From the NCBI GenBank assembly GCA_038087875.1, contig JAXLNO010001064.1, forward strand, positions 124,001-188,000: 64,000 nucleotides of DNA. The letters run 5' to 3'. Position numbers and translations under genes: made by a program. Below the pieces are notes generated by a model, which had not been told where the DNA came from, made no database searches, and worked only from the letters and a program-made list of their open reading frames with translations. Source of the DNA: Malacoraja senta (taxonomy: Eukaryota). Numbering within the stretch: position 1 is the first letter of the stretch; every line of letters begins with the position of its first letter. Below, one piece after another: positions 203 through 64,000 of this stretch.

Positions 203-547
203 GAAGTGGACATTATATGTACTTTTTCCATCAGGAAGGCAACTTTGTATTGAAAGGACCAGACAGTCCTGGAAATGGCCCCATTGACTTGGAATGGAGG
301 CTACACTCAGGGCAACAAACCACAAAGCGATTGGCCACTTTCCACAGAGAAGATCAGCAGTGGGACGTACAATGGAGTGATGAGTACAATCAAATACCAG
401 GCATCTCCCAGAGGATGCATGCGGACTGGGGTACCCTTAATCTGAGGATCAGGATGCCCACATTCAAACTTGCAGGACTGTTCACCTGGAATCAGACACA
501 GCCCGCTGGGAAAATCCTGAGACAGTGGGAACTATTTGGGATTAAAG
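203..547 (+). CDS. Ig-superfamily receptor copy A, exon encoding Ig domain D1 (V-like, both canonical Cys absent); leader exon lies upstream of the window
   Basis: ttttcctacAG at 201-202 and GTaata at 548; 345 nt, phase 1-1, open. GSGHYMY...VLKGP...DLEWR...LNLRI...LAGLFTW...ELFGIK has V-set spacing with the C-strand Trp. Confidence 0.8.
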
Positions 548-1347
548 GTAATAGAGTCATAGTGTCACACAGCACTGAAACAGGCCCTTTGGCCAAATTC
601 ATCCATACTGACCAACTACCCATCTAAACATCCCATTTGCCCTCATTTGGCCCATATCCCTTTAACCTTTTTTCTGTATAACTGTTTAAATGCCCTTTAA
701 ATACTGTACCTGCATCAAACACTTCCTCTGCTCGATCTTTCCATAAAGTATGTTCATGTACCACACTTTTTGTCAAAAAACTGCCCCTAATATTAAGGCA
801 TATATCAAATCTGCCCCTCTCACCTTAACCATGTACCAGCTAGTTTTTGATTCCCCAACCCTGGAAAAGGGACCATGTGCGTTTACTATAGATATGCCTC
901 TCATGATTTTATTCACTCCCATATAATCTCTGTTAAAGACATCCAAGAAATATAATCAGTCTGAAGAAGGGTCTCAACCAGAAACGTCACCTATCTATGT
1001 TCTCTAGAGTTCAAAGGTCTTTTATTGTCACGTGTACCAATTAAGGGGCAGTGCTATTCATATTACCAGACCTGCTGAATTACTCCTGCATTTTATGTCC
1101 TTTTATATATTAACCAGCATCTGCAGTTCTGTGTTTCTACTATACTAAAAACATCCCTACCTGGAAGTGTTGATGTGGGAGACGAGGGGGGCGAGGGGGA
1201 CAGGTGGTCACTACCAGGAAGTTTTGATGCCATCACTGAGCACGGCAGCTCAACATTCAGCCGACTGTCTGCAGGAAAAAGACAATTCTGCCCACAGTAG
1301 TTCAGAAAGGTGTTGGTCAACTGAACCACATGTGTCTGTTTCCACAG

Positions 1348-1620
1348 TTGAGGCAGACTCACCGAGGCCAGTGATGGGCAGTGACATCACCCTCAGCTGT
1401 ACCATCTCCAGACTCCCAGATACCATCAGTCTTCACTGGAAACCAAGAGGCTCATCTCAGCAGAACAGGAGGAACAACACTGATCAGATCCGTCTGAATA
1501 ACGCCGTCTATCTGATGGTCCAACACATTGGAGCAGGAAATCCCAATCTATACACATGGGAAGTGCAGGAAAATACCTCCATTGTTCTCACTGGAGACAC
1601 CAATGTTGAAGTGGATCAGG
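1348..1620 (+). CDS. Copy A exon, Ig domain D2 (C2-like)
   Basis: gtttccacAG acceptor, GTGAGT donor; 273 nt, phase 1-1. VEADSPRPVMGSDITLSCTIS...LHWK...NLYTWEV...VEVDQ. Confidence 0.88.
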
Positions 1621-1947
1621 GTGAGTCCAAAGCTGCCTTGCAGCAGGTATTAAATAGTTCTTGATATCAAACTGTTCCACATGTTGTATAGTGAGCACTG
1701 ACTCCACCCGTGGGCTTCCACACTGCAGGATGTGGACATTGCCTTTACCCTGGGACATGGTGTAAATATAAAATGGTGGCACTAAGATTGATGGAGCAAC
1801 ACAGGAGAACCAAGAGATTCATTTCAGTTCACCTGCATGAATCAAAGAGAATAATATCCAGTGATGGAAATAACATCTAGTTTTCAGTGTATAACAGAAC
1901 AGGAAAATATGAACTAATTCAAGTATAAATGCAGAGGGAATACCAGA

Positions 1948-2640
1948 ATCAGAATCAGAATCACATTTTATTGGCCACGTAATCATACACAAGGAATTTG
2001 ACAGTGCTTTGCTCGCATAAGGTAAAAACACGATATACACCAGACAATTAAAAATAAAACATTATAATTTAAACATGTGAAAATAAAGTACCGGAGTAAA
2101 AAGAGGCTACCGACTTTTGGCTGTTGAGTAGAGCTACGGCTCGTGGGAAGAAGTTGTTTTTTATGTCTGGCTGTGGCAGCTTTGATAGTCCGGACTCACC
2201 TGCCAGAGGGAAGTGATTCAAAGAGCTTGTGGCCAGGGTAAGAGGGGTCAGAGATGATCTTACCCGCTCGCTTCCTGGTCCTTGCAGTGTACAGTTCATC
2301 AATGGAGGGAAGGTTGCTGCCAATAACCTTCTCAGCTGATCGGACGATTCGCTGCAGGTTCCAGGTATCGTGCTTGGCGGCTGAGCCAAACCAGACCATG
2401 ATGGAGAAGGTGAGGACAGACTCTATGATGGCCGTGTAGAATTGGACCATCATTGCCTGTGGCAGGTTGTGTTTCCTCAACTGCCGCAGGAAGTACATCC
2501 TCTGTTGGGACTTTTTGACTGTGCAGTCGATGGTGGCCTCCCATTTAAGGTCTCTGGAGATGATGATTGCGAAGAAATTAAATGACTCCACAGTTGTGAC
2601 TGTGGTGTTGTTGAAGATGAGTGGGGGGAGGGGAGGGGGA
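1948..2640 (-). mobile_element. Rex1/Babar-type LINE 3-prime fragment (duplicated at about 61795-62460, +)
   Basis: RT C-terminus KKSQQRMYFLRQLRK...HKLFESLPSGR...FFPRAVALLN; (GATTCT)n tail at 1948-1965. Confidence 0.8.
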
Positions 2641-2759
2641 CCTCTACAATCAGGAGGGGAGGATTGAGTCTACAATCAATTCCACTGTCTTAAGAGCACT
2701 GCGCTTCAGGTTGTTGCGATGTCAACAGGACACCAGCTTTATGATTAGGGTGACTTGGA

Positions 2760-3165
2760 CATCGTGCTGAAGTAAGCATGCAGGTACAGCAGGCAATGGA
2801 GAAAGCAAATGGCATGTTGGCCTTCATAGCGAGATGATTTGAGTATAGGAGCAAAGAGATCCTACTGCAGTTGTACGGGGCCTCGTGAGACCACACCTGG
2901 AGTATTGTGTGCAGTTTTGGTCTCCTAGTTTGAGAAAGGACATTCTTCCTATCGAGGGAGTGCAGCAAAGGTTCACCAGGTTAATTCCTGGAATGGCGGA
3001 CTGACATATGATGAAAGAATGGATCGACTGGGTTTATATTCACTGAAATTTAGGATGAGAGGGAATCTTATAGAAACGTATAAAATTATTAAGGGATTGG
3101 GCAGGCTAGATGCAGGAAAAATGTTCCCCATGTTGGACGAGTCCAGAACCAGGGGTCCCAGCTGA
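2760..3165 (+). mobile_element. CR1 LINE 3-prime fragment (duplicated at about 61255-61680, -)
   Basis: Matches the other CR1 copies in the window (KANGMLAFI...[19 protein letters not shown] region). Confidence 0.8.
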
Positions 3166-3263
3166 CATCCCAGAGCCGGGGGTTTGTCCCTGTGGAAACT
3201 CACAACATTGTATCTCGGCGTGTGTGGAAATCTAATTCTTTGTTCCATGTCCCTCTCTTTCAG

Positions 3264-3602
3264 GTTTACATAACAAGACGTACACAGTTTATCGCTCAGT
3301 CACAGATCACAGTGAACTCGACCTGATTTGTGAAGCTTCTCCTGAGCTCAGTGAAACCAAATGGACTTGGAGATCACCACGTTTCCAGAATCAAGAGAAG
3401 GAAATAGCTTCTTCTCACAGGTCTGAGCCGATACATGGCGACAGGAGCTACTTTGGGAATCGACTGGAAACCACAGAGGGAAATGTGAATGGCAAGAATT
3501 TCCATGTGAGGATTGTCCCCGTGCAGTTTGCAGATGCCGGAGTTTACACATGTTCCACAGGATCAAATATACATGTGACCATTGAACTAATCACATTTAC
3601 AG
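3264..3602 (+). CDS. Copy A exon, Ig domain D3 (V-set, canonical)
   Basis: ctcttttcAG acceptor, GTAGGA donor; 339 nt, phase 1-1, open. LDLICEAS...KWTW...RL...DAGVYTC. Confidence 0.92.
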
Positions 3603-4408
3603 GTAGGAGACTGGATGTTACTACTTTCAAGAAATAAGTTACTGGTGTAGAGTTTCTAATCTGAGTACAGACTGCAATGTCAGCAGAAATTTCCAAGTTT
3701 GAAGAATTATTTTACCTCCACAACCTCCTCTTCAACTTATTTGTATTTTGCTGAACCCAAAATCTGCCCTAAACCAACATTATTGGGAATCACATCAAAT
3801 GTTATTTTCATTTATTTTGCTGAAAACACATTGTTTTATACATAAGAGAGGGAATATGATGAAATGTGATTCACAAAGGTGCAAATGAGCTTCCATCGAA
3901 AATATTTTAAAATCATTCAACTTCTCTTAACACATTCCCCAAGTTTCTTTGACCCCAAACGACCCATCCTAATTTTTGAAGGCTCACTGGAGGCTTAAAA
4001 CTGAGTGTATTTTGTGGAATTTATCGATTAATATTTACCTGGATGAGTGTTGTGGCCAAAACTGTGGCCAGAGACAATGATGTGGGCATTGGTTGCTCTT
4101 TGTATAATTAGTTCAAAACTGTTGTGAATGATTATGGAAAAGACACTTGGAGAGGTACATGGATGGGAAAAGTGCAGAGGGATATGGGCCAAATGTGGGA
4201 ACATATTTTAGATGGAGCATCTTGGTCCGCATGGATGAGTTGGGCTGAATGGACCGAATTGTTTCATGCTGTATGACTATGCCTCTAACTCTTGTTGTGC
4301 AATATAATTTTTACACTTAGAACGCCAGATACTGGTGTCAAAGTACTGAGAAAAACACAACACAATCCAGACAAAATTCATTGTTTTACGATTTTCTTCT
4401 TTCCACAG

Positions 4409-4677
4409 TCACAACTGAACCATCTGGCGCAGTGACTGAGGGAAGAAAGATTACCCTGACCGCTCTGTGTCCCATGTCACTGATTCAATGAGACTGGTTT
4501 GGATCAATGATGAAGGCAAAGTTGTAGAGGAGAAAAACCTCATGCAAACAAAGCAGGAGGACAATTCTTTGCAGCTGATTATTGCAATAGCTGATGGAAT
4601 AAGAAGGAAATGGACATGTGGTTTGTTTCATCAAAGCACAGCCAAGGTTTTCATTCTATATAATCTGCAGGTGAACA
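4409..4677 (+). pseudogene. Copy A exon, Ig domain D4 (C2-like, WxC motif) with a 1-nt deletion
   Basis: ttccacAG acceptor, GTAAGT donor; 269 nt, one short of 270. ACC-GC lacks the T of TGC present in copy B, giving TGA at 4489-4491. The restored frame reads ITLTCSVSHVTDSMRLVWIND...RRKWTCGLF. Confidence 0.88.
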
Positions 4678-5296
4678 GTAAGTTTCTTAGCTTCTGCTCT
4701 TCGTTATCTCGACACAGAGTTCTTGTCACGTTGCTATTCTTTTTGGATAACTTTTAACATTCCATGTCTTACTGCAAGTAGAGCTCAATCATAGACATTT
4801 CCTTCAAACCTCTTGTCCATGCCTATAAGGTCACTTCTATTGTAAGTAGTCCAGGTCTCTGAAGCACATGGGAGCACATGGATCACTACTGCTGGCAGAC
4901 CACTGACCAAGACCTGTGTTGGCGATCTCATTGAAGGTGATCGGGAATTTCATCATCAATGTCTGTCCTTGTTGATAAGTGTCTCCAGAGGTATGAAAAC
5001 TGGTCCAGTAGTATGAAAACTAGTGTGTCACTGTGAACCTTTTTGTCAGAGGTCAGTATAGTAAGGTGGGCAGCTTGGTGGAAGATCTTTGCCATAACAC
5101 CCAAACTGTGCCCCTTAAAGATCACAAAAGTAGTGAAAATCATCTTACAAATAGTTGTACAAGTTTCTTTACACTGTTCTGATGCTGTAAAACATTACAG
5201 CGGTTGAAGCATCCACAGTAACTTCACCAAAGGCTGCCATGTGAGAACAGAAGATGTGGGGGAGGGAATACTGATGTCTTCACCTTGTCTGACCAT

Positions 5297-5561
5297 GATG
5301 GCTCAGTGGTAGGGTTGCTGCCTTACAGCGCCAGGGACCCGGGTTCAATCCTGAAGGTAAGGAGTTTGTACCTTCGTCCCAGGTTTTCCGGTTTTTTCCC
5401 AAATTCCAAAGATGTACAAGTCTGTAGGTTAATAGGCTTGGTTTAATTGTATGTTGTCCCTGGTGTGTGTAGGATATTGTTATCTGTGGGAATCGCTGGT
5501 TGGTACGGACTCGGCGAGCCGAAGGGCCTGTTTCCGCGCTGTATCTCTAAACTAAACTAAA
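5297..5561 (+). mobile_element. tRNA-derived SINE, HE1/V-SINE type (duplicated at about 58895-59200, -)
   Basis: tRNA-like head (GCTCAGTGG...GGTTCAATCC), central domain, CR1-like tail ending (CTAAA)n. Confidence 0.8.
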
Positions 5562-6324
5562 CACGCCCTTTCCTCCCAATCCCACCCATCCGTTAATCCC
5601 TGCCCTTCATGTGGCCCCAAGCCTCGGTGAAAGACATTTTGTACAACGCTGACAGAAGGCAAAGCACTGATCCCTAACAGAGGAAGATCCTGTAAACACC
5701 CAGGCACAAAGAAACAATCTCCACCACACATAGATCAATGAAGAGTCAGTGAAGCACAAAGTGGAAAGTATCAATGTCCCACAGGAACACTTTAATTCCT
5801 CACAGATAATTACATCATCCAACCATAGAATTGTGGAATGGTTGTAGCACAGAAGGTGGCCATTTGACCCATCATATCCATGCTAACTCTCATCCAGTGC
5901 AACTCGCTAATTCTACCCCCTCTCCTTTTGCCATTACATTGCAGCTTTTTCATCACTATATATTTGTCCAATTCTCTCTGGAAAGCCACGATAGAACCCA
6001 GCTCCCCAACTGATGCAGACAGTACACTTCAGACTCCAACTATCTGCTGCCTAAAAAGATTTTCCTCAAGTCATTCTAACATGTTTCCCCTTTATTTTAA
6101 ACCTATAACTTTTTGTGCTCAGCCTTTCCACTGAAGGGAGCATCCTTCCACAATCCATTCTGTTCAGACTGAATAAATGATGCATAAATGAACAATGATA
6201 CCATTGATGTGATGAAAGAGCATTATTGACTCTTGTCTTCAAACTCTCTCTTCAGTGTGCCATGGTAATAACTGGACAGAGAACACCATAAAAATAATCT
6301 CAATTATACCAACCATGTTTACTG

Positions 6325-6638
6325 TTTAGTTTAGTTTAGAGATACAGCGCGGAAACAGGCCCTTCGGCCCACCGGGTCCACGCCAACCAGCGATCCCCGC
6401 ATATTAACACTATCCTACACCCACTAGGGACAATTTTTACATTTACCAAGCCAATTAACCTACAAACCTGTAAGTCTTTGGAGTGTGGAAGGAAACCGAG
6501 GATCTCGGATAAAACCCATGCAGGTCCCGGGGAGAAAGTACAAACTCCGTACAGACAGCACCCGTAGTTGGGATCGAGCCCGGGTCTCCGGCGCTGCATT
6601 CACTGTAAGGCAGGAACTCTACCGCTGTGCCACCATGC
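6325..6638 (-). mobile_element. HE1/V-SINE-type SINE (duplicated at about 57827-58130, +)
   Basis: Full-length reverse copy with (TTTAG)n tail and tRNA-like head. Confidence 0.8.
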
Positions 6639-8276
6639 CGCATTCATTGTGTCATCTCTTTGTGACATGTTTACAGTTTGACTTGCCGATTCAACTGCTT
6701 CAATGCACCATCTGATGTGATTATTTGACTGAACACAGCAACCTGCTCCCTGATGGTCACTGTGTGCTATAGGTTGGTGTTATTAATCCTTACTCCTGGC
6801 GAGCAGCAGTCTCCCCCTGGGAGAGGACAACAGGGCTCTGAGAGTCCACTGAGGAATGAGGACTTTGGTTGTCCTCTGCCTGTTCCTCAGTGCCAGTAAA
6901 ACCCTGCTCCGTCAGCCGCTGCACCAAGGGAGAGGCCACCCCCACCCACACACACTCCCACTGTGGTGTCCCCACCTCCCGGATTGGAAATCTGTGCTCC
7001 CGGCTGAGCAGAAGCCTCCCCATGTACGCTCATCTAGCACAGTCTCGCTCTGGAGCAGAACTGAAGTTGAACTTTATTTTACAAGGGTCGCGCACACCAG
7101 CCTCTCCATCCTTTGGCCTCATTGCAGACTGATGCTTTTGGGTGTTGAGCTGTCCTTAAAGGGCAGGGGATATCAATCAGTGAGTGAATAGATTAGTTGG
7201 TGTGTGGAATTAATGCATGGATCAACCATCTCCAATGTTACACTAAAACACATGAAGATGTGTTCATTAGGATTGCAATAATAATGTGTTCAACCTCATT
7301 GACATCAGTAGGCAATGGTTACATGCACAGTACAGTTTTAGTACTTGAAGACCAAAATTAATTTTAGGAGTTGAAAATCCGAATTAAAAATAATAATAAT
7401 AATCAGCAGGACAGATAGGAACTGTGAAAGAGGAACAAGTCCAGCCATGATCACATTAAATGGGGGAGCTGGCTCGAGGGGCTGAATGGCCGACTCCTGC
7501 ACCTATTGTCTATTGTCAAAGATCCTATCTTTGAATCTGACAACGTTTTTATTCATCATAAAACATGAACTCACTTCTTTCCCTTTCCACGGATACTGCT
7601 CAAACGGCTGAGTATTTCTAACCTTTACAGTTCTTGTGCCCTGGTTAGAGAGGATTGAAGCTGGAGGGCAATATCCACTCTGTTGTCAGTAGTGCTCATT
7701 CAACCATTGTTCCAGGCTTAGACTATGATAGACATTTGTCCACTGTACAGTGGGAACTATCACAGCTGAATCAGCTACTTTATCAACCAACCATCAGCTC
7801 CCATATCCTGCCTGAGAAATGTCAGCTAATTGTAACCAAGAAATAGTAACTTGTGTGAATGTTTACAGTCTCTAACTGATGGCTACTGAGGCAAGTTGTG
7901 TCTCTGATCTTTCTGAGTAAGGTCAATTAATCTGGGGAAAAAAAGACACAATGTGCTGGAGTAACTCAACGGGTCAGGCGGAATCTCTGGAGAACATGGA
8001 TAGGTGAGGTTTTGGGTCTTGACCCTACTTCAGACTAAAGGGCTGCGACCCGAAATGTCACCTGCCTAACCTGCTGAGTTTCTCCAACACTTTGTGTCTT
8101 TTATTGGTAAACTCTCATCTGCAGTACCTTGTGTCTCAGTGAATCTGGATCACAAGTTAAACTCAAGACTTCTGATCTAAATTAGTCAGTGTGGTTAATG
8201 CCTGGTCTTTGGGGGAGCTTTTGAATGATGTCCATTTATTCTACAAATGTGAACTCTGTGTTTATTATTTTGACAG

Positions 8277-8384
8277 AGAATTACACTTTTATATACATCA
8301 TTGTTGGAATTATCGGGAGTCTGGCTGTTCTCATCGTCATTATACTGGCAGTGGTGTGGTGTCAAAGAAAGCGCAAGCCTACAG
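8277..8384 (+). CDS. Copy A transmembrane exon (uncharged TM)
   Basis: ttttgacAG acceptor, GTAAAG donor; 108 nt, phase 1-1. NYTFIYIIVGIIGSLAVLIVIILAVVWCQRKRKPT: hydrophobic span then basic stop-transfer residues. Confidence 0.9.
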
Positions 8385-9086
8385 GTAAAGCACATGAAGA
8401 CATCCTTAATGCAGCACAGATTCCCCAAATTATCAATGACAATGTTATCTCTGATACAAGGAGAAAAGAACAATATATTTTGGATAAGAAAAGTATCTGT
8501 TTGTGCTTATGTTGTTGATTTCAGACATTTTGTGGTCAATTAAAGCATTATTTATGCAATGTGGATTGTCTACCTGCGTTGCCATGAGGAGTCTGCTGTA
8601 TGATTCAAGGTGCTGTTCTGCAATGATCTGACCACGTGGTGATTGTGTCACCATCCCCTGTGTAAACCATTATCAAATAAACATGCCAGAAGTTGAAGTA
8701 GAGCTAGTGTAATCATGTAGAAAATATGGTCTCCAATTTGCCCTCAATATGTTCCTATTTACTGGGGGATAAATATTGGCCAGGAAACCAGGAGACCAAG
8801 GTATCTCCACTACACTTTGGTGGTTCAAACTTAAAATGAAAATTTTGCCTTGTGTACCATTCTAATATGGTCATAATTTAGGGAACACTGTGTTTCCATG
8901 GACTCTGATTTTATACACATCGTCTTATCCCACCATTAAATGTCTCTGCCATACATCTGAAGCCATGTTCCTGGTCATTCTGGTGGATCTCATTATTAAT
9001 GGGGTACAGTTTAAACATTGGATTGCTGCTTCTTTAAAATCAAGCCGGATTAAAGTCTTAATCAGAAAATAATACTTATTTTCCAG

Positions 9087-9164
9087 AAATTAATGTGACC
9101 CCAGTACCTGAGATGAGCCGTGTTGCTGAATATATGTCTGTGAGTAGGAAGACAACGCAAGAAG
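9087..9164 (+). CDS. Copy A cytoplasmic exon 1 (Tyr motif AEYMSV)
   Basis: ttattttccAG acceptor, GTAAAT donor; 78 nt, phase 1-1, open. EINVTPVPEMSRVAEYMSVSRKTTQE. Confidence 0.65.
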
Positions 9165-9842
9165 GTAAATAGATGACTCAGTCAATGAATCTCTAGTTGT
9201 AGAGTGTTGTATTTGATGAAGCTACCTATTTCACATTTCACAGTTTTGTAACAAGAATGTGAGGAAGGGAACCTCAAGCTCACAAACTAATTGATCAATT
9301 CAACAGTCTCTCTTGTGTCAATTCACCCCTCAGTCCCAATCTTCCTCATCCAACTGCAGGTCTTACTCTGCATTGCTCAATTGACTAATTTTCACTGGAC
9401 TATCATGGTCAACCCATGAATGTTGAGACATCACCATGAACAACATATTCACACTCCTAATTTATTGTTGATCCTGATTAACAGCTTGGTTAGTGGCTCT
9501 CTAAAGAATGGACAACACTTGCCCTTTCAAAAGTCACCATCCCTTTCACTAAATATCATCTAGCATTAAATGCCTCCAATTCACTTTGCCACTAGTTCAG
9601 ATTTTATTCTAAAGTGAAAATAACAACAACATTACAGAATGGTTAGAGCATCATTAATAAATGGTGGAGAGGTGATGTTTCGGATCGAGACCCTTCTTTT
9701 GAGTCTGAAGAAGGGTCACGACCCGAAACTTCATCTATACATGTCATCCAGAGTTGCTGCCTGACCTGCAGAGGTACTCCAGCACTTTGTGTCCCTTTGT
9801 GTATTAACCAGCATCTGCAGTTCTTTGTTTCTACCTTAGACA

Positions 9843-10565
9843 GAATCAGAATCAGATTTTATTCGCCAAGTATGTTTTGCAACATACGAGGAATTTCACT
9901 GGCCAGGTCAGTCATACAATTAAAAAGCAACAGACACAAAAACACATTTTAACATGAACATCCACCACAATGACTCCTACACATTCCTCACTGTGATGGA
10001 AGGCGAAATAAAGTTCAAGTCCTTCACTTGTGTTCTTCCTCGGTTGGGGGCCTCGAGCCCCCGTTGACGGGATGATCTTAAATCCCGTAGTCGGCGGTGT
10101 TCTGGCCCTCCGCGTCGAGGCGATCCGCTCCCGTATCGGGGAGATGTCAGCTCCCCCGCGCCGGGCGTTCAAACATCGTGTCGGGGCTGCTTGAACCTTC
10201 TGCAGCGTTGGAGCTCCCGTTCTGCAGCGTTGGAGCTCCCGACTAAGCCTCTCCTGAGACTGCGAGCCATTGATGGTAAGTCCGCAGGCCGCGGTGGGAG
10301 CGATCCCAGGCAAGGGATCCGCTCTGGTGTTAAGTCCGCGCCCCGCGGTGGGGCTCACGGCAGTCCGGGGCGGCTTCCAGCTCCATCGATGGTAGGCGGC
10401 AGAGCCCGATGAATGTGATCCGAAAAATGATCACATCTCTGGGAAGGTGAGAAACTGAAAAAAAGTTTCCCTCGACCCCCCCCCCCCTCCCCCACATAAA
10501 ACAAACTGAAGTACATTAAATCAAACTTTTAACAAACACTAAAATAAAAAAAAGATGAATAAACG
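9843..10565 (-). mobile_element. GC-rich non-autonomous retroelement with LINE-type 3-prime tail (related copies about 27096-27998, 29725-30465, 47413-48122)
   Basis: Shared CATCCACCACAG...CTGTG(A/G)TGGAAGG hairpin, CpG-rich body and T-rich 5-prime part in four places. Confidence 0.55.
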
Positions 10566-11546
10566 ATGGTGGACAGTATTGTTTTTGCCAGAATTTAGAC
10601 CACATTTCTGATGAATCTGATGAACAACAGAGAAATCTTTCTTGAAAAATCTGAAGGAACCTTTCAATAAATCACACATTGCTCATGTTTTAATGAGAAA
10701 AATATCAATTCCTAACCTTGTTCCACAGTATGGATCAATTGTATTCCACTGTGTTCCACAGTAAAGGGATCGATTGTATTCATATATTGTCTTTCTGCTG
10801 ATGCAACAAAAGCTTTTCCCTGAACCTCGGCACATATGACAATAAACTAAACTGACCCTCAGCTGATCATATCTCCCCATATTCCTTGATCTTAGTCCAC
10901 ATATGACGTCCCTAGTTTGTATTTTGCAGTCGTTTTTTCCTCTAACCTGTGGTCTTTGTAATTTATGCTTCATTTATGTGTTGTGTTGCCTTAGTCAAAA
11001 TGCCTCTGATGCTGCTGCAGGTAACATTTTCATTGTACATGTACCTCGCCATTGTTGTGTATCTGTCAATAAATTCAACAACTACTAAATGTACTGAATG
11101 ATTTGGCTCCAGACAAATGTGTGGTAGAGAATGTAACCGATTCTTTGTTCTCCTCATCTTCATCCTTATTGTCTCTTGTCTTAAACCTTTACCCCTGGTC
11201 ATGGTCTCCCCCAACAGGGAACATCTTCCTCCATCCAGACTGGTCTACCTGTTGGAACTTTCTATGTTTCCATGAGAACCATTGTCATTCTTCTAAACTC
11301 CACAAGCCAAATTAACTCAAATTCTCTTTGTAATTTCCACCATCCCAGGAAGAAGTCAAAACAAGGAGGTTAGGAGATGTGACTTTTCATGGAGGGGTTT
11401 TTCAAACTGCTGGAGATACTCTATGGGTCGAGCAGCATCTATGGAGGGAAAGCGATGGTCAGCGTTTTGTATCGTGACCCTGCATTGACTTAAATCATCC
11501 TTTTTCAAATACAAATAAATTCTTTGTTTCCAACTTATTTCCACAG

Positions 11547-11603
11547 ATACAGAGGAAGGTATTCATTATGGATCCATCTCCTTCCAGCCAAAAGCATCTG
11601 GTG
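11547..11603 (+). CDS. Copy A cytoplasmic exon 2 with canonical ITIM IHYGSI
   Basis: Long pyrimidine tract then ccacAG, GTAAAC donor; 57 nt, phase 1-1. DTEEGIHYGSISFQPKASG fits I/V/L/S-x-Y-x-x-I/L/V. Confidence 0.75.
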
Positions 11604-13005
11604 GTAAACTGACTTTATTTAAATGTTTCAATCTTTTATCACAGTGAGGATTATTGGCACTGAGCAGTCTGAAACCCTGCTGTCTTTGTCCACTTTACAA
11701 CAGCATCAGGCATTCCTGGGATAAAGTCCCTCGCTCTGTCCGTCGACATGAAGTGGGACAATCAGCTGAGGCTCAGTTAGGAGCCCAACCTTCTCGGGGT
11801 GGGTTCAGCCTCCCCAACCTTCTCTGAGTGTGTTCTGCTCCCATAAACTACAGGGAGTGTGTTCTGGTCCCCTAACCTACTCTAAGTGGGTTCTGGTCCC
11901 CTAGCCTACTCTGAATGGGTACAATAGCCACTCCAGAGATCCAACCAGTGACATCCAGGCTGCTGTTACAACACTGTTGTGCATTGTCGTTGGTGATGAG
12001 AAGTGAAACCAAGACACCATTTATGTCCATCTGAAGAACATTCTTCTACACAACTCCTGACTGAGCTAGAAGTGATCAGCACAAACTTCCTTGAATTACA
12101 AATTTTTGATATTGTTTAGTAGGACTGGATGGTACAATCCCTAAGTTTCTTCACCACAACTGACACCCGATTTTCTTGGGGGTGACCACGAGGTGATTTT
12201 GCTACCAATCAGACACATCTTCAGTTGTGTACCTCAACATCACTAGGTGTTTCGGCCTTTTATCACAAGACACCCTCAGTCAAGGCAGGCCCACCGCAGG
12301 GTGATCAGCGCTGGGTGTGTGTCTTATGGTTAGCCTCTAGATGGTCGCATGGCAGCTCAGACAGCATCTTTTCTCTTCAGCCACAGCCAGTGACTGCTCC
12401 ATTCTGCTTTTATCCTTCCATCTTCCTCTCTACCGCTGACTGTGGCTGGTTGGGCTCTGGACTCGTGTCCGTTGGTGGGGCAGTACTTGGTTGAGCTTCG
12501 CCTGGGGTGCTGATACCCTGTGGACTGTGGTGGTTAACCTGCCACTGGGCTTCACTCCACTGATTTGGCCTACCTCTTAGAAGGTAATGGTCAATGCGAG
12601 GCCCCTCACCAAGCTCTCCCAGGCACTTTTCCCTGCCTTGGTGGATCTTGAGACCCTTCTCTGATGTTATCTTATCCCAGCCACAGATGCAGCTTCATAG
12701 CTTATGTCCTGCCCGGGCTGCTGCTCTGTCAATTACTGTGCTAGTTCTCTTATTTATAGTCGATTCCTTCCATAACAATATACGGGTGTCTTGTTCATGC
12801 TGACCATTCCTGCAGCTCACTGTAAATGCAGAGGTATGAGCATACAGATGACAGATGGGTTTTCTGGAATTCAATGTCTTGTTGATCTACTGTCAGGAAG
12901 AGCAAAATGTAGTAAGCTTTAGACTTTTATATTTCATTTGTCGTTTCCTTTTTCAACATAATCCACCAGTGTCATTTTTAATTGTGATGTTTGCATTTAT
13001 TACAG

Positions 13006-13049
13006 GCAGCAGCGATAATACACTGTCCTCCAATCAAGCATCAGGCACT
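13006..13049 (+). CDS. Copy A cytoplasmic exon 3
   Basis: tttattacAG acceptor, GTAAGT donor; 44 nt, phase 1-0. GSSDNTLSSNQASGT. Confidence 0.7.
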
Positions 13050-13181
13050 GTAAGTATATTGATTCTTGTTGATGAAATCCCAGATCGTACAAGTATGAAT
13101 TAAAGCTGTAATCTGTTTACGGATCTAAACAGCGACAACAGCAATGGTCTTAAATACAATTGGTATTTCTTTCTCTTTCAG

Positions 13182-13241
13182 AACCTTGTTTCTTCAAAGG
13201 AAGATGAGTCTGTCATCTATGCTGAAACAGTAAAAACATAA
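13182..13241 (+). CDS. Copy A terminal coding exon with ITIM-like SVIYAETV
   Basis: tttctctttcAG acceptor; phase 0 matches the previous donor. NLVSSKEDESVIYAETVKT-TAA. Confidence 0.75.
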   Translation, partial: NLVSSKEDESVIYAETVKT

Positions 13242-33120: not shown

Positions 33121-33156
33121 TGGGCAAGTTTGGCCGAAGGAAGGGCCTGTTTCCAT

Positions 33157-54063: not shown

Positions 54064-54676
54064 CTGGAGAGTGGACAAATGCATCTTTGCACTGCAGAGT
54101 TTTCACAAGTCAAGATGACAAGTAAAGGAGCAACTGAATTTATAATTGTACATACAGTTAATATATTCAATGTGTAATTTTATATTTCTAATGATCAGTT
54201 ATTGAAATGGTTTATTTTTTTAATGGAAAAAAATGTTGATTTATATAAATATAAGGGAAGCTTTAAGAACTGAGTATTCCATGTGTCAGTGACCTTGATG
54301 AACTGTTGTACTAGCCCGATACCCGTCTGATCAGTTTGTTCAACAACACAGAATAAACGCTCAGGCACAACCCCAAATTTGAACACACAGTTGAGCCTAA
54401 CACTCTGTTGTCATGTGGGATTGCTGCAGCATTGGCCTCACCAGATTAAAGATTATTTGTTAAACTGAGGCACCTTCTGGCCTCTTGGGACACAATAGAT
54501 GTTGGAATGTGAATCACCAAAGTGCAGTGGAGATACCTTTGTCTCCTGGTTTCCTGGCCAATATTCATGCCTCAGTAAATAGGAACATGTTGAGGGCAAA
54601 TTGGAGACCATATTTTCTACATGACTACAATAGCTATACTTCAACTTCTGGCATGTTTATTTGATAATGGTTTACA

Positions 54677-54985
54677 TAGAAACATAGAAACATAAAAAAT
54701 AGGTGCAGGAGAAGGCCATTCGGCCCTTCGAGCCTGCACCTCCATTCAATATGATCATGGCTGATCATCCAACTCGGTATCCTGTACCTGCCTTCTCTCC
54801 ATACCCCCTGATCCCTTTAGCCACAAGGGCTAACCCCTTAAGAATTTTGTAAGTTTCTATAAGTCCCCCCTCAATCTTCTAAATTCTAGCGAGTACAAGC
54901 CGAGTCGATCCAGTCTTTCTTCATATGAAAGTCCTGACATCCCAGGAATCAGTCTGGTGAACCTTCTCTGTACTCCCTCTAGAGA
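54677..54985 (-). mobile_element. CR1 fragment present only in duplication arm 2
   Basis: Absent at the homologous site near 8663 in arm 1; flanked by TTTACA on both sides. Confidence 0.8.
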
Positions 54986-55280
54986 TTTACACAGGGGATG
55001 GTGACACAATCACCACATGGTCAGATCATTGCAGAACAGCACCTGAAATCATACAGCAGACTCCTCATGGCAATGCAGGTAGACAGGACAATCCACATTG
55101 CATAAATAATGCTTCAATTGACCACAAAAAGTCTGAAATCAATTTCTCAACAACATAAGCACAAACGGATACTTTTCTTATCCAAAATATATTGTTCTTT
55201 TCTCCTTGTAACAAAGATAACATTGTCATTGATAATTTGGGGAATCTGTGCTGCATTAAGGATGTCTTCATGTACTTTAC

Positions 55281-55385
55281 CTGTAGGCTTGTGCTTTCTT
55301 TGACAGAACTCCACTGCCAGTATAATGACGATGAGAACAGCCAGACCTCCGATAATTACAACAAATCTGAGGAAAGTATAATTCC
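55281..55385 (-). CDS. Copy B transmembrane exon with Arg and Glu
   Basis: Same splice sites as A; 105 nt. NYTFLRFVVIIGGLAVLIVIILAVEFCQRKHKPT. Confidence 0.88.
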
Positions 55386-56223: not shown

Positions 56224-56999
56224 TCAAGATTCAAGATTCAAGAGAGTTTATTGTCATGTGTCCCAGTTAGGACAATGAAATTCTTGCTTTGCTTCAGCAC
56301 AACAGAATATAGACGGCATGAATACAGAACAGATCAGTGTGTCCATATACCATTGTATAAATATATACACACATGAATAAATAAAACAGATAAAGTGCAA
56401 TAAACAGATAATGGGCTATTAATGTTCAGAGTTTTGTTTGAGTTGAGTTTCATAGCCTGATGACTGTGGGGAAGTAGCTATTCCTGAACCTGGATGTTGC
56501 AGTCTTCAGGCTCCTGTACCTTCTACCTGAAGGTAGCGGGGAGATGAGTGTGTGGCTAGGATGATGTGGGTCCTTAATGATGCTGCCAGCCTTTTTGAGG
56601 CAGCGACTGCGATAGATCCCCTCGATGGTGGGGAGGTCAGAGCCGATGATGGACTGGGCAGTGATAACAACTTTTTGTAGTCTTTTTCCCTCCTGGGCGC
56701 TCAAGTTGCCGAACCAAGCGACGATGCAACCGGTCAGCTTGCTCTCTACTGTGCACCTGTAAAAGTTCGAGAGAGTCCTCCTTGACATACCAACTCTCCG
56801 TAATCTTCTCAGGAATTAGAGGCGCTGATGTGCTTTCTTTATAATAGCATCAGTGTTCTCGGACCAGGAGAGACCTTCAGAGATGTGCACGCCCAGGAAT
56901 TTGAAGCTCTTGACCATTTCCACCATCAACCCGTTGATATAAACGGGACTGTGGGTCCCCATCCTACCCCTTCCAAAGTCCACAATCAGGTCCTTGGTT
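56224..56999 (-). mobile_element. Rex1/Babar-type LINE fragment present only in arm 2
   Basis: Arm 1 reads GAGGAACAA|GTCCAGCC uninterrupted near 7437; LPSGRRYRSLKTATSRFRNSYFP and (TCTTGAA)n tail. Confidence 0.88.
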
Positions 57000-59816
57000 T
57001 TGTTCCTCTTTCACAGTTGTTCTTCTTTCACAGTTCCTATCTGTCCTGATTATTATCATTATTTTTCATTCGGATTTTCAACTCCTAAAATTAATTTTGG
57101 TCTTCAAGTAATAAAACTGTACTGTGCATGTGACCATTGCATACTGATGTCAATGAGGTTGAACACATTATTATTGCAATCCTAATGAGCACATCTTCAT
57201 GTGTTTTTAGTGTAAAATTGGAGATGGTTGATCCATGCATTAATTCCACACACCAACTAATCTATTCACTCACTGATTGATATCTCCTGCCCTTTAAGGA
57301 CAACTCAACACCCAAAAGCATCAGTCTGCAATGAGGCCAAAGGATGGAGAGGCTGGTGTGCGCGACCCTTGTAAAATAAAGTTCAACTTCAGTTCTGCTC
57401 CATAGTGAGACTGTGCTACATGAGCGTACATGGGGAGGCTTCTGCTCAGCCGGGAGCACAGATTTCCAAATGAGGAGGTGGGGACACCACAGTGGGAGTG
57501 GGTGTGGGTGGGGGTGGCCTTTCCCTTGGTGCAGCGGCTGACGGAGCAGGGCTTTACTGGCACTGAGGCACAGGCAGAGGACAACCAAAGTCTTCATTCC
57601 TCGGTGGACTCTCAGCCGACTGTAGTCAGAGCCCTGTTGTCCTCTCCCAGGGTGAGACTGCTGCTCGCCAGGAGTAAGGATTAATAACACCAACCTATAG
57701 CACACAGTGACCATCGGGGAGCAGGTTGCTGTGTTCAGTCAAATAATCACATCCGATGGTGCATTGAATCAGTTGAATCGGCAAATCAAACTGTAAACAT
57801 GTAACAAAGAGATGACACAATGAAGGTGGCACGGTGGGGCAGCGGGAGCGTTGCTGCCTTACAGTTAATGCAGCGCCGGAGATCTGGGCTCGGTGCTGTC
57901 TGTACGGAGTTTGTACTTTCTCCCCGGGACCTGCATGGGTTTTCTCCGAGATCCTCGGTTTCCTTCCACATTCCAAAGACATACAGGTTTGTAGGTTAAT
58001 TGGCTTGGTAAATGTAAGAATTGTCCCTAGTGGGTGTAGGATAGTGTTAGTATGCGGGGATCGCTGGTTGGTGAGGACCCGGTGGGCTGAAGGGCCTGTT
58101 TCCGCGCTGTATCTCTAAACTAAACTAAACAGTAAACATGGTTGGTATAATTGAGATTCTTTTTATGGCTGTTCTCTGTCCAGTTATTACCATGGCACAC
58201 TGAAGAGAGAGTTTGAAGACAAGAGTCAATAATGCTCTTTCATCACATCAATGGCATCATTGTTCATTTATGCATCATTTATTCAGACTGAACAGAATGG
58301 ATTGTGGAAGGATGCTCCCTTCAGTGGAAAGGCTGAGCACAAAAGGTTATAGGTTTAAAATAAAGGGGAAAACATTTTAGAATGACTTGAGGAAAATCTT
58401 TTTGGGCAGCAGGTAGTTGGAGTCTGAGGTGTACTGTCTGCATCAGTTAGGGAGCTGGGTTCTATCGTGGCTTTCCAGAGAGAATTGGACAAATATATAG
58501 TGATGAAAAAGCTGCAATGTAATGGCAAAAGGAGAGGGGGTAGAATTAGCGAGTTGCTCTGGATGAGAGTTAGCATGGATATGATGGGTCAAATGGCCAC
58601 CTTCTGTGCTACAACCATTCCACAATTCTATGATTGGATGATGTCATTATCTGTGAGGAATTAAAGTGTTCGTGTTGGGACATTGATACTTTCCACTTTG
58701 TGCTTCACTGACTCTTCATTGATCTATGTGTGGTGGAGATTGTTTCTTTGTGCCTGGATGTTTACAGGATCTTCCTCTGTTAGGGATCAGTGCTTTGCCT
58801 TCTGTCAGCATTGTACAACCTGTCTTTCACCGAGGCTTGGGGCCACATGAAGGGCAGGGATTAATGGATGGGTGGGATTGGGAGGAAAGGGCGTGTTTAG
58901 TTTAGTTTAGAGATACAGCATGGAAACAGGCCCTTCGGCTCGCCGAGTCCGCACCAACCAGCGATTCCCACAGACTAACACTATCCTACACACACCACGG
59001 ACAACATACAATTTAAACCAAGCCTATTACCCTACAGACTTGTACATCTTTGGAATTTGGGAGAAATCCGGAAATCCTGGAGAAAACCCACACAGGGCAC
59101 GGGATGAAGGTACAAACTCCATACAGACAGCACCTGTAGTCAGGATTGAACCCGGGTCCCCGGCGCTGTAAGGCAGCAACCCTACCACTGAGCCACCATG
59201 GTCAGACAAGGTGAAGACATCAGTATTCCCTCCCCCACATCTTCTGTTCTCACATGGCAGCCTTTGGTGAAGTTACTGTGGATGCTTCAACCACTGTAAT
59301 GTTTTACAGCATTAGAACAGGGGAAAGAAACTTGTACAACTATTTTTAAGATGATTTTCACTACTTTTGTGATCTTTAAGTGGCACAGTTTGGGTGTTAT
59401 AGCAAAGATCTTCCACCAAGCTGCCCACCTTACTATACTGACCTCTGACAAAAAGGTTCATAGTGACACACTGGTTTTCATACTACTGGACCAGTTTTCA
59501 TACCTCTGGAGACACTTATTAACAAGGACAGACATTGATGATGAATTTCCCGATCACCTTCAATGAGATGGCCAAGACAGGTCTTGGTCAGTGGTCTGCC
59601 AGCAGTAGTGATCCATGTGCTCCCATGTGCTTCAGAGACCTGGACTACTTACAATAGAAGTGACCTTATAGGCATGGACAAGAGGTTTGAAGGAAATGTC
59701 TATGATTGAGCTCTACTTGCAATAAGACATGGAATGTTAAAAGTTATCCAAAAAGAATAGCAATGTGACAAGAACTCTGTGTCGAGATAACGAAGAGCAG
59801 AAGCTAAGAAACTTAC

Positions 59817-60078
59817 TGTTCACCTGCAGATTATATGGAATGAAAACCTTGGCTGTACTTTGATGAAACAAACCACATGTCCATTTCCTTCTTACTCCAT
59901 CAGCTATTGCTATAATAAGCTGCAAAGAATTGTCCTCCTGCTGTGTTTGCATGAGATTTTTCTCCTCAACAACTTTGCCTTCATCATTGATCCAAACCAG
60001 ACTCAGTGACATGAGACACAGAGCAGGTCAGGGTAATGTTTCTTCCCTCAGTCACTGCGCCAGATGGTTCAGTTGTGA
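59817..60078 (-). pseudogene. Copy B exon, Ig domain D4 with an 8-nt deletion
   Basis: 262 nt (270 minus 8). TTCAATGA of copy A is missing near 60003, giving ...TCSVSHVTESGLDQ-TGA (59984-59986). The downstream frame keeps LVWINDE...RRKWTC. Confidence 0.88.
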
Positions 60079-60812: not shown

Positions 60813-61151
60813 CTGTAACTGTGATTAGGTCAATGGTCACATATATGTTTGATCCTGTGGAACATGTGTAAACTCCAGCATCTGCAAACTGCACGGGGAC
60901 AATACTTACATGGAAATTCTTGCCATTCACATTTCCCTCTGTGGTTTCCAGTCGATTCCCAAAGTAGCTCCTGTCGACATGTATCGGCTCAGACCTGTGA
61001 GAAGAAGCTATTTCCTTCTCTTGATTCTGGAAACGTGGTGATCTCCAAGTCCATTTGGTTTCACTGAGCTCAGGAGAAGCTTCACAAATCAGGTCGAGTT
61101 CACTGTGATCTGTGACTGAGCGATAAACTGTGTACGTCTTGTTATGTAAAT
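60813..61151 (-). CDS. Copy B exon, Ig domain D3 (V-set)
   Basis: Homolog of 3264-3602; 339 nt, open. LDLICEAS...DAGVYTC (ORF 60601-61176). Confidence 0.92.
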
Positions 61152-62788
61152 CTGCAAGAGAGGGACAGGGAACCAAGAATTAGATTTCCACGCACGCCGA
61201 GATACAATGTTGTGAGTTTCCACAGGGACAAACCCCCGGCTCTGGGATGTCAGCTGGGACCCCTGGTTCTGAACTCGCCCAACATGGGGAACATTTTTCC
61301 TGCATCTAGCCTGACCAATCCCTTAATAATTTTATACGTTTCTATAAGATTCCCTCTCATCCTAAATTTCAGTGAATATAAACCCAGTCGATCCATTCTT
61401 TCATCATATGTCAGTCCGCCATTCCAGGAATTAACCTGGTGAACCTATGCTGCACTCCCTCGATAGCAAGAATGTCCTTTCTCAAACTAGGAGACCAAAA
61501 CTGCACACCATACTCCAGGTGTGGTCTCACCAGGGCCCCGTACAACTGCAGTACGATCTCTTTGCTCCTATACTCAAATCATCTCGCTATGAAGGCCAAC
61601 ATGCCATTTGCTTTCTCCATTGCCTGATGTATCTGCATGCTTACTTCAGCACGATGTCCAAGTCACCCTAATGATAAAGCTGGTGTCCTGTTCACATTGC
61701 AACAACCTGAAGCTCAGTGCTCTTAAGACAGTGGAATTGATTGTAGACTCAATCCTTCCCTCCTGATTGTAGATCTCCCCATCCCCGCCCCCAACTCATC
61801 TTCAACAACACCACAGTCACAACTGTGGAGTCATTTAATTTCTTCGGAATCATCATCTCCAGCGACCTTAAATGGGAGCCCACCATCGACTCCACAGTCA
61901 AAAAGTCCCAACAGAGGATGTACTTCCTGCGGCAGCTGAGGAAATACAACCTGCCACAGGCAATGATGGTCCAATTCTACACGGCCATCATAGAGTCTGT
62001 CCTCATCTTCTCCATCATGCTCTGGTTTGGCTCAGTCACCAAGCACGACACCTGGAGGCTGCAGCAAATCGTCCGATCAGCTGAGAAGGTTATTGGCTGC
62101 AACCTTCCCTCCATTGATGAACTGTACACTGCAAGGGCCAGGAAGCGAGCGGGCAAGATCATCTCTGACCCCTCTCACCCTGGCCACAAACTCTTTGAAT
62201 CACTTCCCTCTGGCAGGTGAGTCCTGACTGTCAAAGCTGCCACAGCCAGACATAAAAACAACTTCTTCCCACGAGCCGTAGCTCTACTCAACAGCCAAAT
62301 GTCGGTAGCCTCTTTTTACTCCGGTACTTTATTTTCACATGTTTAAATTATAATGTTTTATTTTTAATTGTCTGTTTTATATCGTGTTTTTACCATATGC
62401 GAGCAAAGCACTGTCAAATTGCTTGTATATGATTACGTGGACAATAAAATGTTATTCTGATTCTGATATTTCCTCTGCATTTATACTTGAATTAGTTCAT
62501 ATTTTCCTGTTCTGTTATACACTGAAAACTAGATGTTATTTCCATCACTGGATATTATCCCCTTTGATTCATGCAGGTGAACTGAAATGAATCCCTTGGT
62601 TCTCCTGTGTTGCTCCATCAATCTTAGTGCCACCATTTTATATTTACACCATGTCCCAGGGTAAAGGCAATGTCCACATCCTGCAGTGTGGAAGCCCACG
62701 GGTGGAGTCAGTGCTCACTATACAACATGTGGAACAGTTTGATATCAAGAACTATTTAATACCTGCTGCAAGGCAGCTTTGGACTCAC

Positions 62789-63061
62789 CCTGATCCACTT
62801 CAACATTGGTGTCTCCAGTGAGAACAATGGAGGTATTTTCCTGCACTTCCCATGTGTACAGATTGGGATTTCCTGCTTCAACGTGTTGGATTATCAGATA
62901 GATGGCGTTATTCAGACGGATCTGATCAGTGTTGTTCCTCCTGTTCTGCTGAGATGAGCCTCTTGTTTTCCAGTGAAGACTGATGGTATCTGGGAGTCTG
63001 GAGATGGTACAGCTGAGGGTGATGTCACTGCCCATCACTGGCCTCGGTGAGTCGGCCTCAA
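62789..63061 (-). CDS. Copy B exon, Ig domain D2
   Basis: Reverse-complement homolog of 1348-1620 with the same splice sites; 273 nt, open (ORF 62745-63077). The B D1 exon falls beyond the window end. Confidence 0.88.
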
Positions 63062-63185
63062 CTGTGAAAACAGACACATGTGGTTCAGTTCACCAACAGC
63101 TTTCTGAACTACTGTGGGCAGAATTGTCTTTTTCCTGCAGACAGACAGTCGGCTGAATGTTGAGCTGCCGTGCTCAGTGATGTCA

Positions 63186-63515
63186 TCAACACTTCCTGGT
63201 AGTGACCACCTGTCCCCCTCGCCCCCCTCGTCTCCGACATCAACACTTCCTGGTAGTGACCACCTGTCCCCCCCGCCCCCTCGTCACCCACATCAACACT
63301 TCCTGGTAGTGACCACCTGTCCCCCTCGTCTCCCACATCAACACTTCCTGGTAGTGACCACCTGTCCCCCTCGCCCCCCTCGTCTCCGACATCAACACTT
63401 CCTGGTAGTGACCACCTGTCCCCCTCGCCCCCTCGTCTCCCACATCAACACTTCCAGGTAGTGACCACCTGTCCCCCTCGCCCCCTCGTCTCCCACATCA
63501 ACGCTTCCAGGTAGG
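63186..63515 (-). repeat. About 53-bp G-rich minisatellite, about 6 units, in intron D1-D2 of copy B (about 1.3 units in copy A at 1156-1230)
   Basis: Unit GGTGGTCACTACCAGGAAGTGTTGATGTGGGAGACGAGGGGGGCGAGGGGGACA on the minus strand. Confidence 0.9.
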
Positions 63516-64000
63516 GATGTTTTTAGTATAGTAGAAACACAGAACTGCATATGCTGGTTAATATATAAAAGGACATAAAGTGCAGGAGTAATTCAGCAGG
63601 TCTGGTAATATGAATATCACTGCCCCTTAATTGGTACACGTGACAATAAAATACCTTTGAACTCTAGAGAACATAGATAGGTGACGTTTCTGGTTGAGAC
63701 CCTTCTTCAGTGATTATATTTCTTGGATGTCTTTAACTGCGATTTTATGGGAGTGAATAAAATCACGAGGCATATCTATAGTAAACGCACATGGTCTATT
63801 TTCCAGGGTTGGGGAATCAAAAACTAGGTAGTACATGTTTAAGGTGAGAGGGGCAGATTTGATATACCCCTTAATATTAGGGGCAGTTTTTTGACAAAAA
63901 GTGTGGTACATGAACATACTTTATGGAAAGATCGAGCAGAGGAAGTGTTTGATGCAGGTACAGTATTTAAAGGGCATTTAAACAGGTGTATGGAAAAAAA

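Follow-up and report, generated by a model that had tools for sequence, protein, structure and literature searches.

Inverted duplication and probable decay of a CD4/LAG-3-like immunoglobulin receptor gene in the skate Malacoraja senta

We analysed a 64,000-nucleotide (nt) stretch of the Malacoraja senta genome (contig JAXLNO010001064.1; hereafter the window), which holds two related immunoglobulin (Ig) receptor genes, referred to as copies A and B. On balance, we read the window as an instance of birth-and-death evolution in a skate immune-receptor family and not as a working receptor pair: A is most likely the parental copy and B a partial daughter of it, with both in decay and most likely pseudogenes. 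The initial annotation had taken them for paired inhibitory and activating receptors; this reading is not supported for A and B, as both are frameshifted, the missing tail of B would stem from a partial duplication and a nonsense codon, and the Arg of its transmembrane (TM) segment is juxtamembrane. The A/B pair matters little alone because it is probably dead. What is of lasting value is its family, as yet without a name, in which an ectodomain module like that of CD4/LAG-3 goes together with the signalling logic found in paired natural killer (NK) or myeloid receptors. Judged by its sequences, this family is neither CD4 nor LAG-3.

The two copies lie in the arms of an inverted duplication:

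668-8827, plus strand: arm A; runs on to the left of 668 at lower identity
54510-63999, minus strand: arm B; B-only inserts at about 56224-57017 and 54676-54986

Arm A (668 to 8827) and arm B (63999 to 54510) align in collinear blocks at 94-97% identity, so the near-identical inverted duplicate, exons and introns included, that had been proposed is real. The exons of the two copies are 92.6-97.6% identical, and the inserts private to B measure ~793 bp and ~310 bp. Homology of arm A to the orthologue in the little skate (Leucoraja erinacea) begins at 184. The homology between A and B stops at 8827, 443 bp past the end of the TM exon (8384); this agrees with the distance of about 440 bp given in the initial annotation, and the four tail exons of A are without counterpart in B.

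Stop-to-stop frames together with splice sites gave the exon set of A. Every exon is bordered by AG/GT, and those for the Ig domains D1 to D4 are of phase 1. Tyrosine motifs in the tail were compared with the consensus of the immunoreceptor tyrosine-based inhibitory motif (ITIM). The features of copy A are as follows:

203-547, plus strand: Ig exon D1; V-like, without a Cys pair, phase 1/1; best match is domain 5 of skate proteins with eight Ig domains
1348-1620, plus strand: Ig exon D2; C2-type, F-strand Cys replaced by Trp (LYTWEV), as in domain 6 of relatives
3264-3602, plus strand: Ig exon D3; V-set with the canonical Cys pair
4409-4677, plus strand: Ig exon D4; C2 with a WTC motif; 269 nt, 1 nt short
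8277-8384, plus strand: TM exon; uncharged helix, ends CQRKRKPT; donor AG/gtaaag
9087-9164, plus strand: cytoplasmic exon 1 (cyt1); ..VAEYMSV..; spliced joint 8384>9087 in RNA contigs
11547-11603, plus strand: cytoplasmic exon 2 (cyt2); canonical ITIM IHYGSI; linked to cyt1 by an RNA contig
13006-13049, plus strand: cytoplasmic exon 3; small tail exon
13182-13241, plus strand: last coding exon; degenerate ITIM VIYAET, then the stop codon

The fourth Ig exon of A is out of frame: between 4461 and 4462 it lacks the T of its B-strand Cys codon, after which the frame reads ..ITLTALCPMSLIQ and then a stop. Copy B keeps this T and lacks 8 nt ~20 bases further on. Both frameshifts, which were judged against the family consensus ..ITLTCSVS.VT.SMRLVWIN.., reach a stop within about 10 codons. 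The ITIM-bearing tail ascribed to A is borne out: it spans four small exons with one canonical ITIM (IHYGSI) and two degenerate tyrosine motifs (AEYMSV and VIYAET) that miss the consensus; orthologues read (I/V)IYAQI at the place of the latter. Copy A also lacks the cytoplasmic exon with a YxN motif (the YxN exon) that is found in relatives. Searches with single exons yielded little: Pfam gave weak generic Ig matches only, with none for D1 and D4, the D3 exon matched PD-1, JAML and antibody V domains in the PDB at E>=7e-4, which is uninformative, and the D2 exon was equally uninformative in a protein atlas search.

Copy B shows D2, D3, D4 and the TM exon inside the window; its D1 exon would fall beyond base 64000. 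Its features, including an inserted long interspersed nuclear element (LINE)-like sequence with open reading frames (ORFs), are:

62789-63061, minus strand: D2 exon; 97.1% identical to A, open frame
60813-61151, minus strand: D3 exon; 97.6% identical to A, open frame
59817-60078, minus strand: D4 exon; 8-nt deletion, frame reads ...CSVSHVTESGLDQ and then a stop
55281-55385, minus strand: TM exon; ..NYTFLRFVVIIGGLAVLIVIILAVEFCQRKHKPT, encodes Arg and Glu
48700-51921, plus strand: LINE-like ORFs (reverse transcriptase) inserted in the intron of B between the TM and YxN exons
46913-47011, minus strand: YxN cytoplasmic exon; 99 nt (LGNQRQ...IQQMS) with a good acceptor and donor

The YxN exon bears on the earlier statement that B lacks homologues of the cytoplasmic exons of A. 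No match to the four tail exons of A was found, as stated; yet B has a cytoplasmic exon of its own at 47011-46913 on its own strand. It encodes LGNQRQTTPPSKRNTEVESRL, then an in-frame TAA (46946-46944), then GNFEEIQQMS. The TAA replaces the conserved YxN tyrosine, because intact relatives have Tyr there: their exon reads ..SRLYANPDKIQQM.. or ..SHLYGNPDEIQQM.., and orthologues have LY(A/G/S)N at the site. The tail of B would thus stop 23 residues into the exon, without a tyrosine motif. A search of the strand of B within the window found neither a Lys-type TM exon nor further ITIM exons. A reverse-transcriptase fragment (45633-46253) lies ~0.7 kb downstream of the YxN exon.

The TM exons of A and B differ by ~12 substitutions and a 3-nt deletion, which cluster in the first ~40 nt of the exon; in the 100 nt of intron just upstream the copies differ at one base. 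The altered patch resembles the Arg-type TM of Amblyraja radiata LOC116966225 and LOC116969867 (..NYTFIIRFVVIIGG..), and this likeness, together with the clustering, suggests that a small conversion tract made the Arg-type patch of B. The Glu is due to a single T-to-A change. The initial annotation was right that B encodes a TM Arg. Its position is not mid-membrane, however: it sits juxtamembrane at the extracellular border of the helix, immediately ahead of a hydrophobic stretch of 21 residues. The Glu, three residues from the inner end of that stretch, is not mid-membrane either. In both copies read-through of the TM-exon donor (8385-8515, plus strand; 55280-55150, minus strand) is open for ~44 codons (..GK(A/V)HEDILNAAQIPQIINDNV..), and this is also how the A. 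radiata gene model LOC116966225 ends; intron retention could yield an alternative isoform with a short tail here, or the ending could be a mere annotation habit.

Relatives were collected with two queries, the third Ig exon and a shark member of full length. The nearest are from the skates L. erinacea, A. radiata and Rhinoraja longicauda, at 80-93% identity per exon. The L. erinacea LOC129701493 locus (CM054017.1:15735121-15785814) is collinear with A from 184 to 13389 at 85-92% identity, introns included, and is one intact gene with four Ig exons, the TM exon, the YxN exon, cyt1, cyt2 and the last exon; it is intact at D4, where A and B are frameshifted. Compared with it, A lacks locus positions 31885-37641, a 5.7-kb segment that holds the YxN exon (a 99-nt in-frame loss), and B keeps locus positions 31952-32527 with the YxN exon at 47831-46911. 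Further downstream, B gave no match to the little-skate locus, the four tail exons included. The LOC129701493 protein model starts inside an Ig exon and has no signal peptide, and four further Ig-like coding segments are present on the plus strand 0.7-4 kb upstream, at locus positions 6023-9236, immediately ahead of the annotated start; the public model is therefore probably 5'-incomplete, and the gene may encode eight Ig domains.

RNA contigs were available from related skates that carry several paralogues; no run is tied to Malacoraja senta, and no transcript among these contigs could be assigned to A or B. One contig encodes KNYTIIFT.., matching the little-skate protein. The joint 8384>9087, which leads from the TM exon straight to cyt1, is seen in a contig with GT..AG ends; in another contig 95 intervening letters, the YxN exon, stand between the TM exon and cyt1, and cyt1 is joined to ..DTEEGIHYGS.., which is cyt2. 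A contig from a related skate also carries the TM variant ..NYNFIIR.. spliced to the YxN exon, which shows an Arg-type TM linked into the long-tail gene structure as far as its first cytoplasmic exon at least. Given these spliced joints, the exon model is right for the family.

The simplest history of duplication and decay that is consistent with these comparisons is the following. The ancestral gene would have had repeated V-C2-V-C2 modules, an uncharged TM, a YxN cytoplasmic exon and four small ITIM exons, a build that the little-skate gene LOC129701493 still keeps intact. The 5' part of this gene through the YxN exon would first have been copied in inverted orientation, which gave B; B would never have had ITIM exons because the copied segment ended with the YxN exon. 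The parental copy A would later have lost the 5.7 kb with the YxN exon, and the point at which A/B homology ends is the left edge of this deletion. Copy B would then have gained retroelements, a short foreign Arg-type TM patch, the Val-to-Glu change and the nonsense codon at the YxN tyrosine, and each copy would finally have picked up a separate frameshift in its last Ig exon. The product of A as assembled would be cut short to three domains, and so would that of B. Divergence between A and B is 4-6%, compared with 8-15% from the little skate, so the duplication postdates the split from that lineage.

Several points weigh against this history. The main uncertainty is that the two D4 indels could be assembly errors: the frameshifts lie within ~25 bp of each other in copies that are 95% identical and could be a consensus or polishing artefact from cross-mapped reads. 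The ratio of non-synonymous to synonymous substitution between A and B looks near 1, with 12 of the 16 changes in D2 and D3 non-synonymous (a hand count from translations), and such a ratio fits diversifying selection on a live receptor as well as decay. We infer the order of events from one outgroup locus. Finally, how A and B are oriented to each other hinges on two scaffold gaps:

13714-14001, strandless: assembly gap 473 bp past the stop codon of A; touches no exon
22405-22604, strandless: intergenic assembly gap, followed after 159 bp by a zinc-finger ORF; both gaps together split the contig of A from that of B

Neither gap interrupts an exon or a reading frame. Because the contigs of A (1-13713) and B (22605-64000) are connected solely through these gaps, the convergent orientation and the spacing of the copies are statements of the scaffolding. 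The description of two convergent V-C2-V-C2 genes thus holds for A, which has all four Ig exons and the TM exon, and for the part of B inside the window; the convergent orientation rests on scaffolding.

In a different reading of the pair both copies function, A as an inhibitory receptor and B as its activating or decoy partner: gene conversion would keep the ectodomains alike, the TM Arg of B would bind an adaptor of the FcR-gamma or CD3-zeta type, and the frameshifts would be sequencing errors. We consider this rather improbable. The ectodomain exons are indeed 97% identical while TM and tail differ; however, the D4 exons of both copies are out of frame as assembled. The TM of B is locally remodelled to R...E between unchanged flanks, and FcR-gamma partners, e.g. 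NKp46 and GPVI, typically have their Arg a few residues inside the outer leaflet; the Arg of B, however, is juxtamembrane, with a full hydrophobic stretch of 21 residues after it, and other skates have this Arg-type TM too, spliced to the YxN exon in RNA contigs. A tail ending 23 residues into the YxN exon and free of tyrosine motifs would suit an activating partner, and several mammalian activating partners arose likewise, but partial duplication accounts for the missing tail. The family elsewhere clearly has both kinds of member, but those of the activating type use a quite different and highly conserved Lys TM exon, which is absent from the window.

The pair could also be an artefact of assembly, i.e. 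two alleles, or one locus assembled twice, that were scaffolded in opposite orientation, with the indels and missing exons due to collapsed or chimeric contigs; this we regard as improbable. It would explain why the copies are on different contigs with two N gaps as their sole join, why the arms are near-symmetrical in the window and why two indels are close together in the same exon. Divergence of 4-6% with ~50 gap openings, however, far exceeds normal allelic variation, B carries 793-bp and 310-bp inserts of its own as well as an expanded minisatellite and a LINE, and the 5.7-kb deletion of A and the B-specific structure each lie inside one contig and not at a gap. The remaining reading, a canonical shark-type CD4 with reversed CD4 pseudogene fragments such as those reported beside catshark CD4 by Takizawa et al. 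2023 (PMC10768021), has next to no chance although CD4 is the best structural match: TM and tail are unlike the conserved chondrichthyan CD4 tail (RRAL..RHPLCREHSYQ, CxH; PMC10768021 supplement 8), none of six window motifs matched the shark CD4/LAG-3 sequences of that paper (the single match was in coelacanth LAG-3), and no relative returned bears the name CD4 or LAG-3, most being 'uncharacterized'. The tail comparison and the motif look-ups rule it out.

We therefore return to probable duplication and decay for A and B, and turn to the family around them. It comprises >100 proteins from every elasmobranch examined, Callorhinchus and Latimeria, with more distant members in sturgeon, bichir, eels and cyprinids, among others. 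The family is multigenic: a shark, ray or chimaera species has dozens of copies. Nearly all database entries are 'uncharacterized'; the exceptions are the automatic guesses 'obscurin-like', 'vascular cell adhesion protein 1-like', 'CEACAM5-like' and 'CD276 homolog'. A literature search found no description of the family, the CEACAM literature mentioning a skate expressed sequence tag or fish CEACAMs without detail. With the sturgeon and cyprinid relatives as queries, only 'uncharacterized' entries and no named G6f-like protein were returned.

In many members the V-C2-V-C2 module is doubled to give eight Ig domains. An example derived from nurse-shark complementary DNA is deposited as 'obscurin-like protein' (AGQ17915.1); its accession adjoins that of nurse-shark CD8-beta (AGQ17914), which suggests that both come from the same immune-gene survey. 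In two skate eight-Ig proteins, domain 5 matches the D1 exon of the window at 84-86% identity and domain 1 at 35-41%, and the YTW signature of the window D2 is that of domain 6 in the eight-Ig proteins. Together with the four upstream Ig exons of the little skate, these matches place the window domains as domains 5-8 of the eight-Ig relatives, and the ectodomain seen in the window is therefore probably only half of the gene.

Pairing was surveyed in 135 chondrichthyan sequences. ITIM-type tails are found in 60 proteins, and 18 have a Lys in the TM and a short tail without tyrosine motifs. The Lys-type TM is strongly conserved, with the Lys in mid-membrane (..W.I.TVSGYL(L/F)VKL....GLI..), and occurs in sharks, rays and one skate (Rhinoraja). 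Heptranchias perlo has a Lys-type member that shares 85% identity with one of the ITIM type. The idea of paired receptors in the initial annotation thus holds at the level of the family and fails for A and B, since the Lys TM exon is absent from the window. From these motifs we infer that the ITIM-tail members would inhibit upon tyrosine phosphorylation, with SHP-type phosphatases at (I/V)xYxx(I/V) and Grb2 at YxN, and the short-tail Lys-TM members are predicted to activate via a DAP12-like adaptor. No match bore the names DICP, NITR, LITR or MDIR, families which we take to differ in domain types.

The relation to CD4 and LAG-3 was assessed by fold and by profile. An AlphaFold model of the full-length shark member (mean predicted local distance difference test score 70.7) was used as a Foldseek query. 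Against the PDB, four-domain CD4 came first (3e-16) and took 5 of the top 7 places, with LAG-3 at ranks 6 and 10. Against the Swiss-Prot part of the AlphaFold database, CD4 held ranks 1-9 (4e-22), Ly-9 ranks 10 and 14, and LAG-3 ranks 16, 17 and 20; the next other family was at 2e-17. The family profile is collinear with human LAG-3 from the F strand of D3 via the WxC motif of D4 to the TM segment. E-values of the whole-length profile were 2e-12 for NCAM1, 2e-11 for LAG-3 and 2e-11 for CEA, and those of the D3-D4 profile 5e-13 for pIgR, 4e-11 for LAG-3 and 1e-7 for CD4; the D1-D2 profile matched titin and NCAM only. Membership in the CD4/LAG-3 group is unsupported by these profiles because the E-values are no better than those for NCAM, pIgR and CEA.

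The WxC motif is restricted to the membrane-proximal C2 domain (KWTC in the window; W.C nearly invariant in the family alignment), and the other C2 domain reads YxC in most members, with YTW in its place in the window. The CD4/LAG-3 architecture claimed earlier therefore stands in part: the V-C2-V-C2 order of the module, the membrane-proximal WxC and CD4 as top fold match agree with it, and the eight Ig domains of relatives, to whose domains 5-8 the window corresponds, the missing WxC in the other C2 domain and the unsupported membership do not. Regarding the tail, the four exons of A contain neither the Cx(C/H) nor the (F/Y)xxL(D/E) motif when compared with PMC10768021 supplement 8, in accord with the earlier remark that A has no CxC motif. 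The argument that a single-exon D1 separates the gene from CD4 does not discriminate, as D1 is likewise unsplit in shark CD4 and LAG-3 (PMC10768021). In catshark, the family is on a 244-Mb chromosome and CD4 on chromosome 16; the two appear, from chromosome size, to be on different chromosomes. From sequence and model together, the ectodomain is CD4/LAG-3-like in build and probably close to G6f-like, but these comparisons fall short of placing it in either group.

On a wider scale, we put forward tentatively, and with some doubt, that the family may be an ancient sister lineage of CD4/LAG-3 and G6F/G6f-like, kept from chimaeras to teleosts, whose expansion in cartilaginous fish gave a true paired system of inhibitory (ITIM and YxN) and activating (Lys-TM, DAP12-type) receptors. 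In that case the first use of the V-C2-V-C2 'co-receptor' scaffold would have been in germline-encoded, NK-like or myeloid recognition, and the window would show one locus of a paired system turning over. The family may bear on the origin of CD4/LAG-3 and G6F and on what cartilaginous fish use instead of KIR, LILR and Ly49. The little-skate orthologue and the Lys-TM members are concrete intact genes for testing.

Between the two copies in the window, only a zinc-finger ORF and retroelements were seen. The ORF (22763-24409, plus strand; 548 aa) consists nearly entirely of C2H2 zinc fingers (zf-H2C2_2 E=7e-132, 16 stretches) and sits in a GC-rich block (50-56% GC over 22-32 kb). Retroelement fragments bearing reverse transcriptase are at 48700-51921 (plus strand), 45633-46253 (minus strand) and 29066-29716 (plus strand). 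A 242-nt inverted repeat (33157-33398 and 33849-34090; 97% complementary, arms 450 nt apart) may represent the ends of a small DNA transposon. A minisatellite with a unit of ~50-70 bp occurs once in the first intron of A (1157-1229, plus strand) and about four times in B (63238-63497, minus strand), where it translates as repeated GDRWSLPGSVDVGDEG in an open frame and is not an exon.

Compared with CD4 and LAG-3, the family shares the repeating V-C2 module, in which the G strand of the V domain runs straight into the A strand of C2, the WxC in the F strand of the membrane-proximal C2 and, with the shark genes, the unsplit first-domain exon. It differs in having WxC in one of the two C2 domains of the module and no Cys pair in the first V-like domain, in a tail of YxN and ITIMs on five small exons in place of the Cx(C/H) of CD4 or the single-exon FxxL(D/E) tail of LAG-3, and in its many eight-Ig members and dozens of copies per species.

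Among named clusters, the protein atlas places teleost 'g6f-like' closest to a shark member and a teleost member alike (0.96-0.97, which are feature scores and not an alignment). Teleost G6f-like (G6fL) is reportedly the subject of Ohashi et al. 2010. It is a thrombocyte collagen receptor with four Ig domains, YxN and an ITAM (immunoreceptor tyrosine-based activation motif; Hughes et al. 2012, PMC3528668). In common with the family it has four Ig-like domains, one TM segment and a cytoplasmic YxN, whose exon is conserved in the family. G6fL, however, is a single thrombocyte gene with its own ITAM, split over two exons, whereas this expanded family is predicted to signal via ITIMs or the Lys-TM; no ITAM was seen in the family.

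Ly-9/SLAMF3, the second-best protein type after CD4 in the Swiss-Prot fold search, is also V-C2-V-C2 with a disulfide-less first V domain. No sequence-level signal to it was seen; SLAM tails carry immunoreceptor tyrosine-based switch motifs (TxYxxV/I), and the third domain of Ly-9 is also without a disulfide, both unlike the family. With CEACAM the family shares a first domain without a disulfide (as in the N domain) and an ITIM tail split over small exons. CEACAM, however, has a V-like domain and then only C2-type A/B domains, whereas the third domain here is a V-set with the canonical disulfide, and the matches to CEA and CEACAM1 were no better than other Ig matches.

In organisation the family parallels KIR, LILR, SIGLEC11/16, CHIR and CEACAM1/3, which likewise have ITIM-tail members and short-tail members with a charged TM on closely related ectodomains; clustered recent duplicates, pseudogenes and conversion-like patches are shared with KIR and SIGLEC. 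In contrast to these paired families, A and B of the window are no ITIM/charged-TM pair and both are broken. The family as a whole differs from them in the types and order of its domains, V-C2-V-C2, single or doubled.

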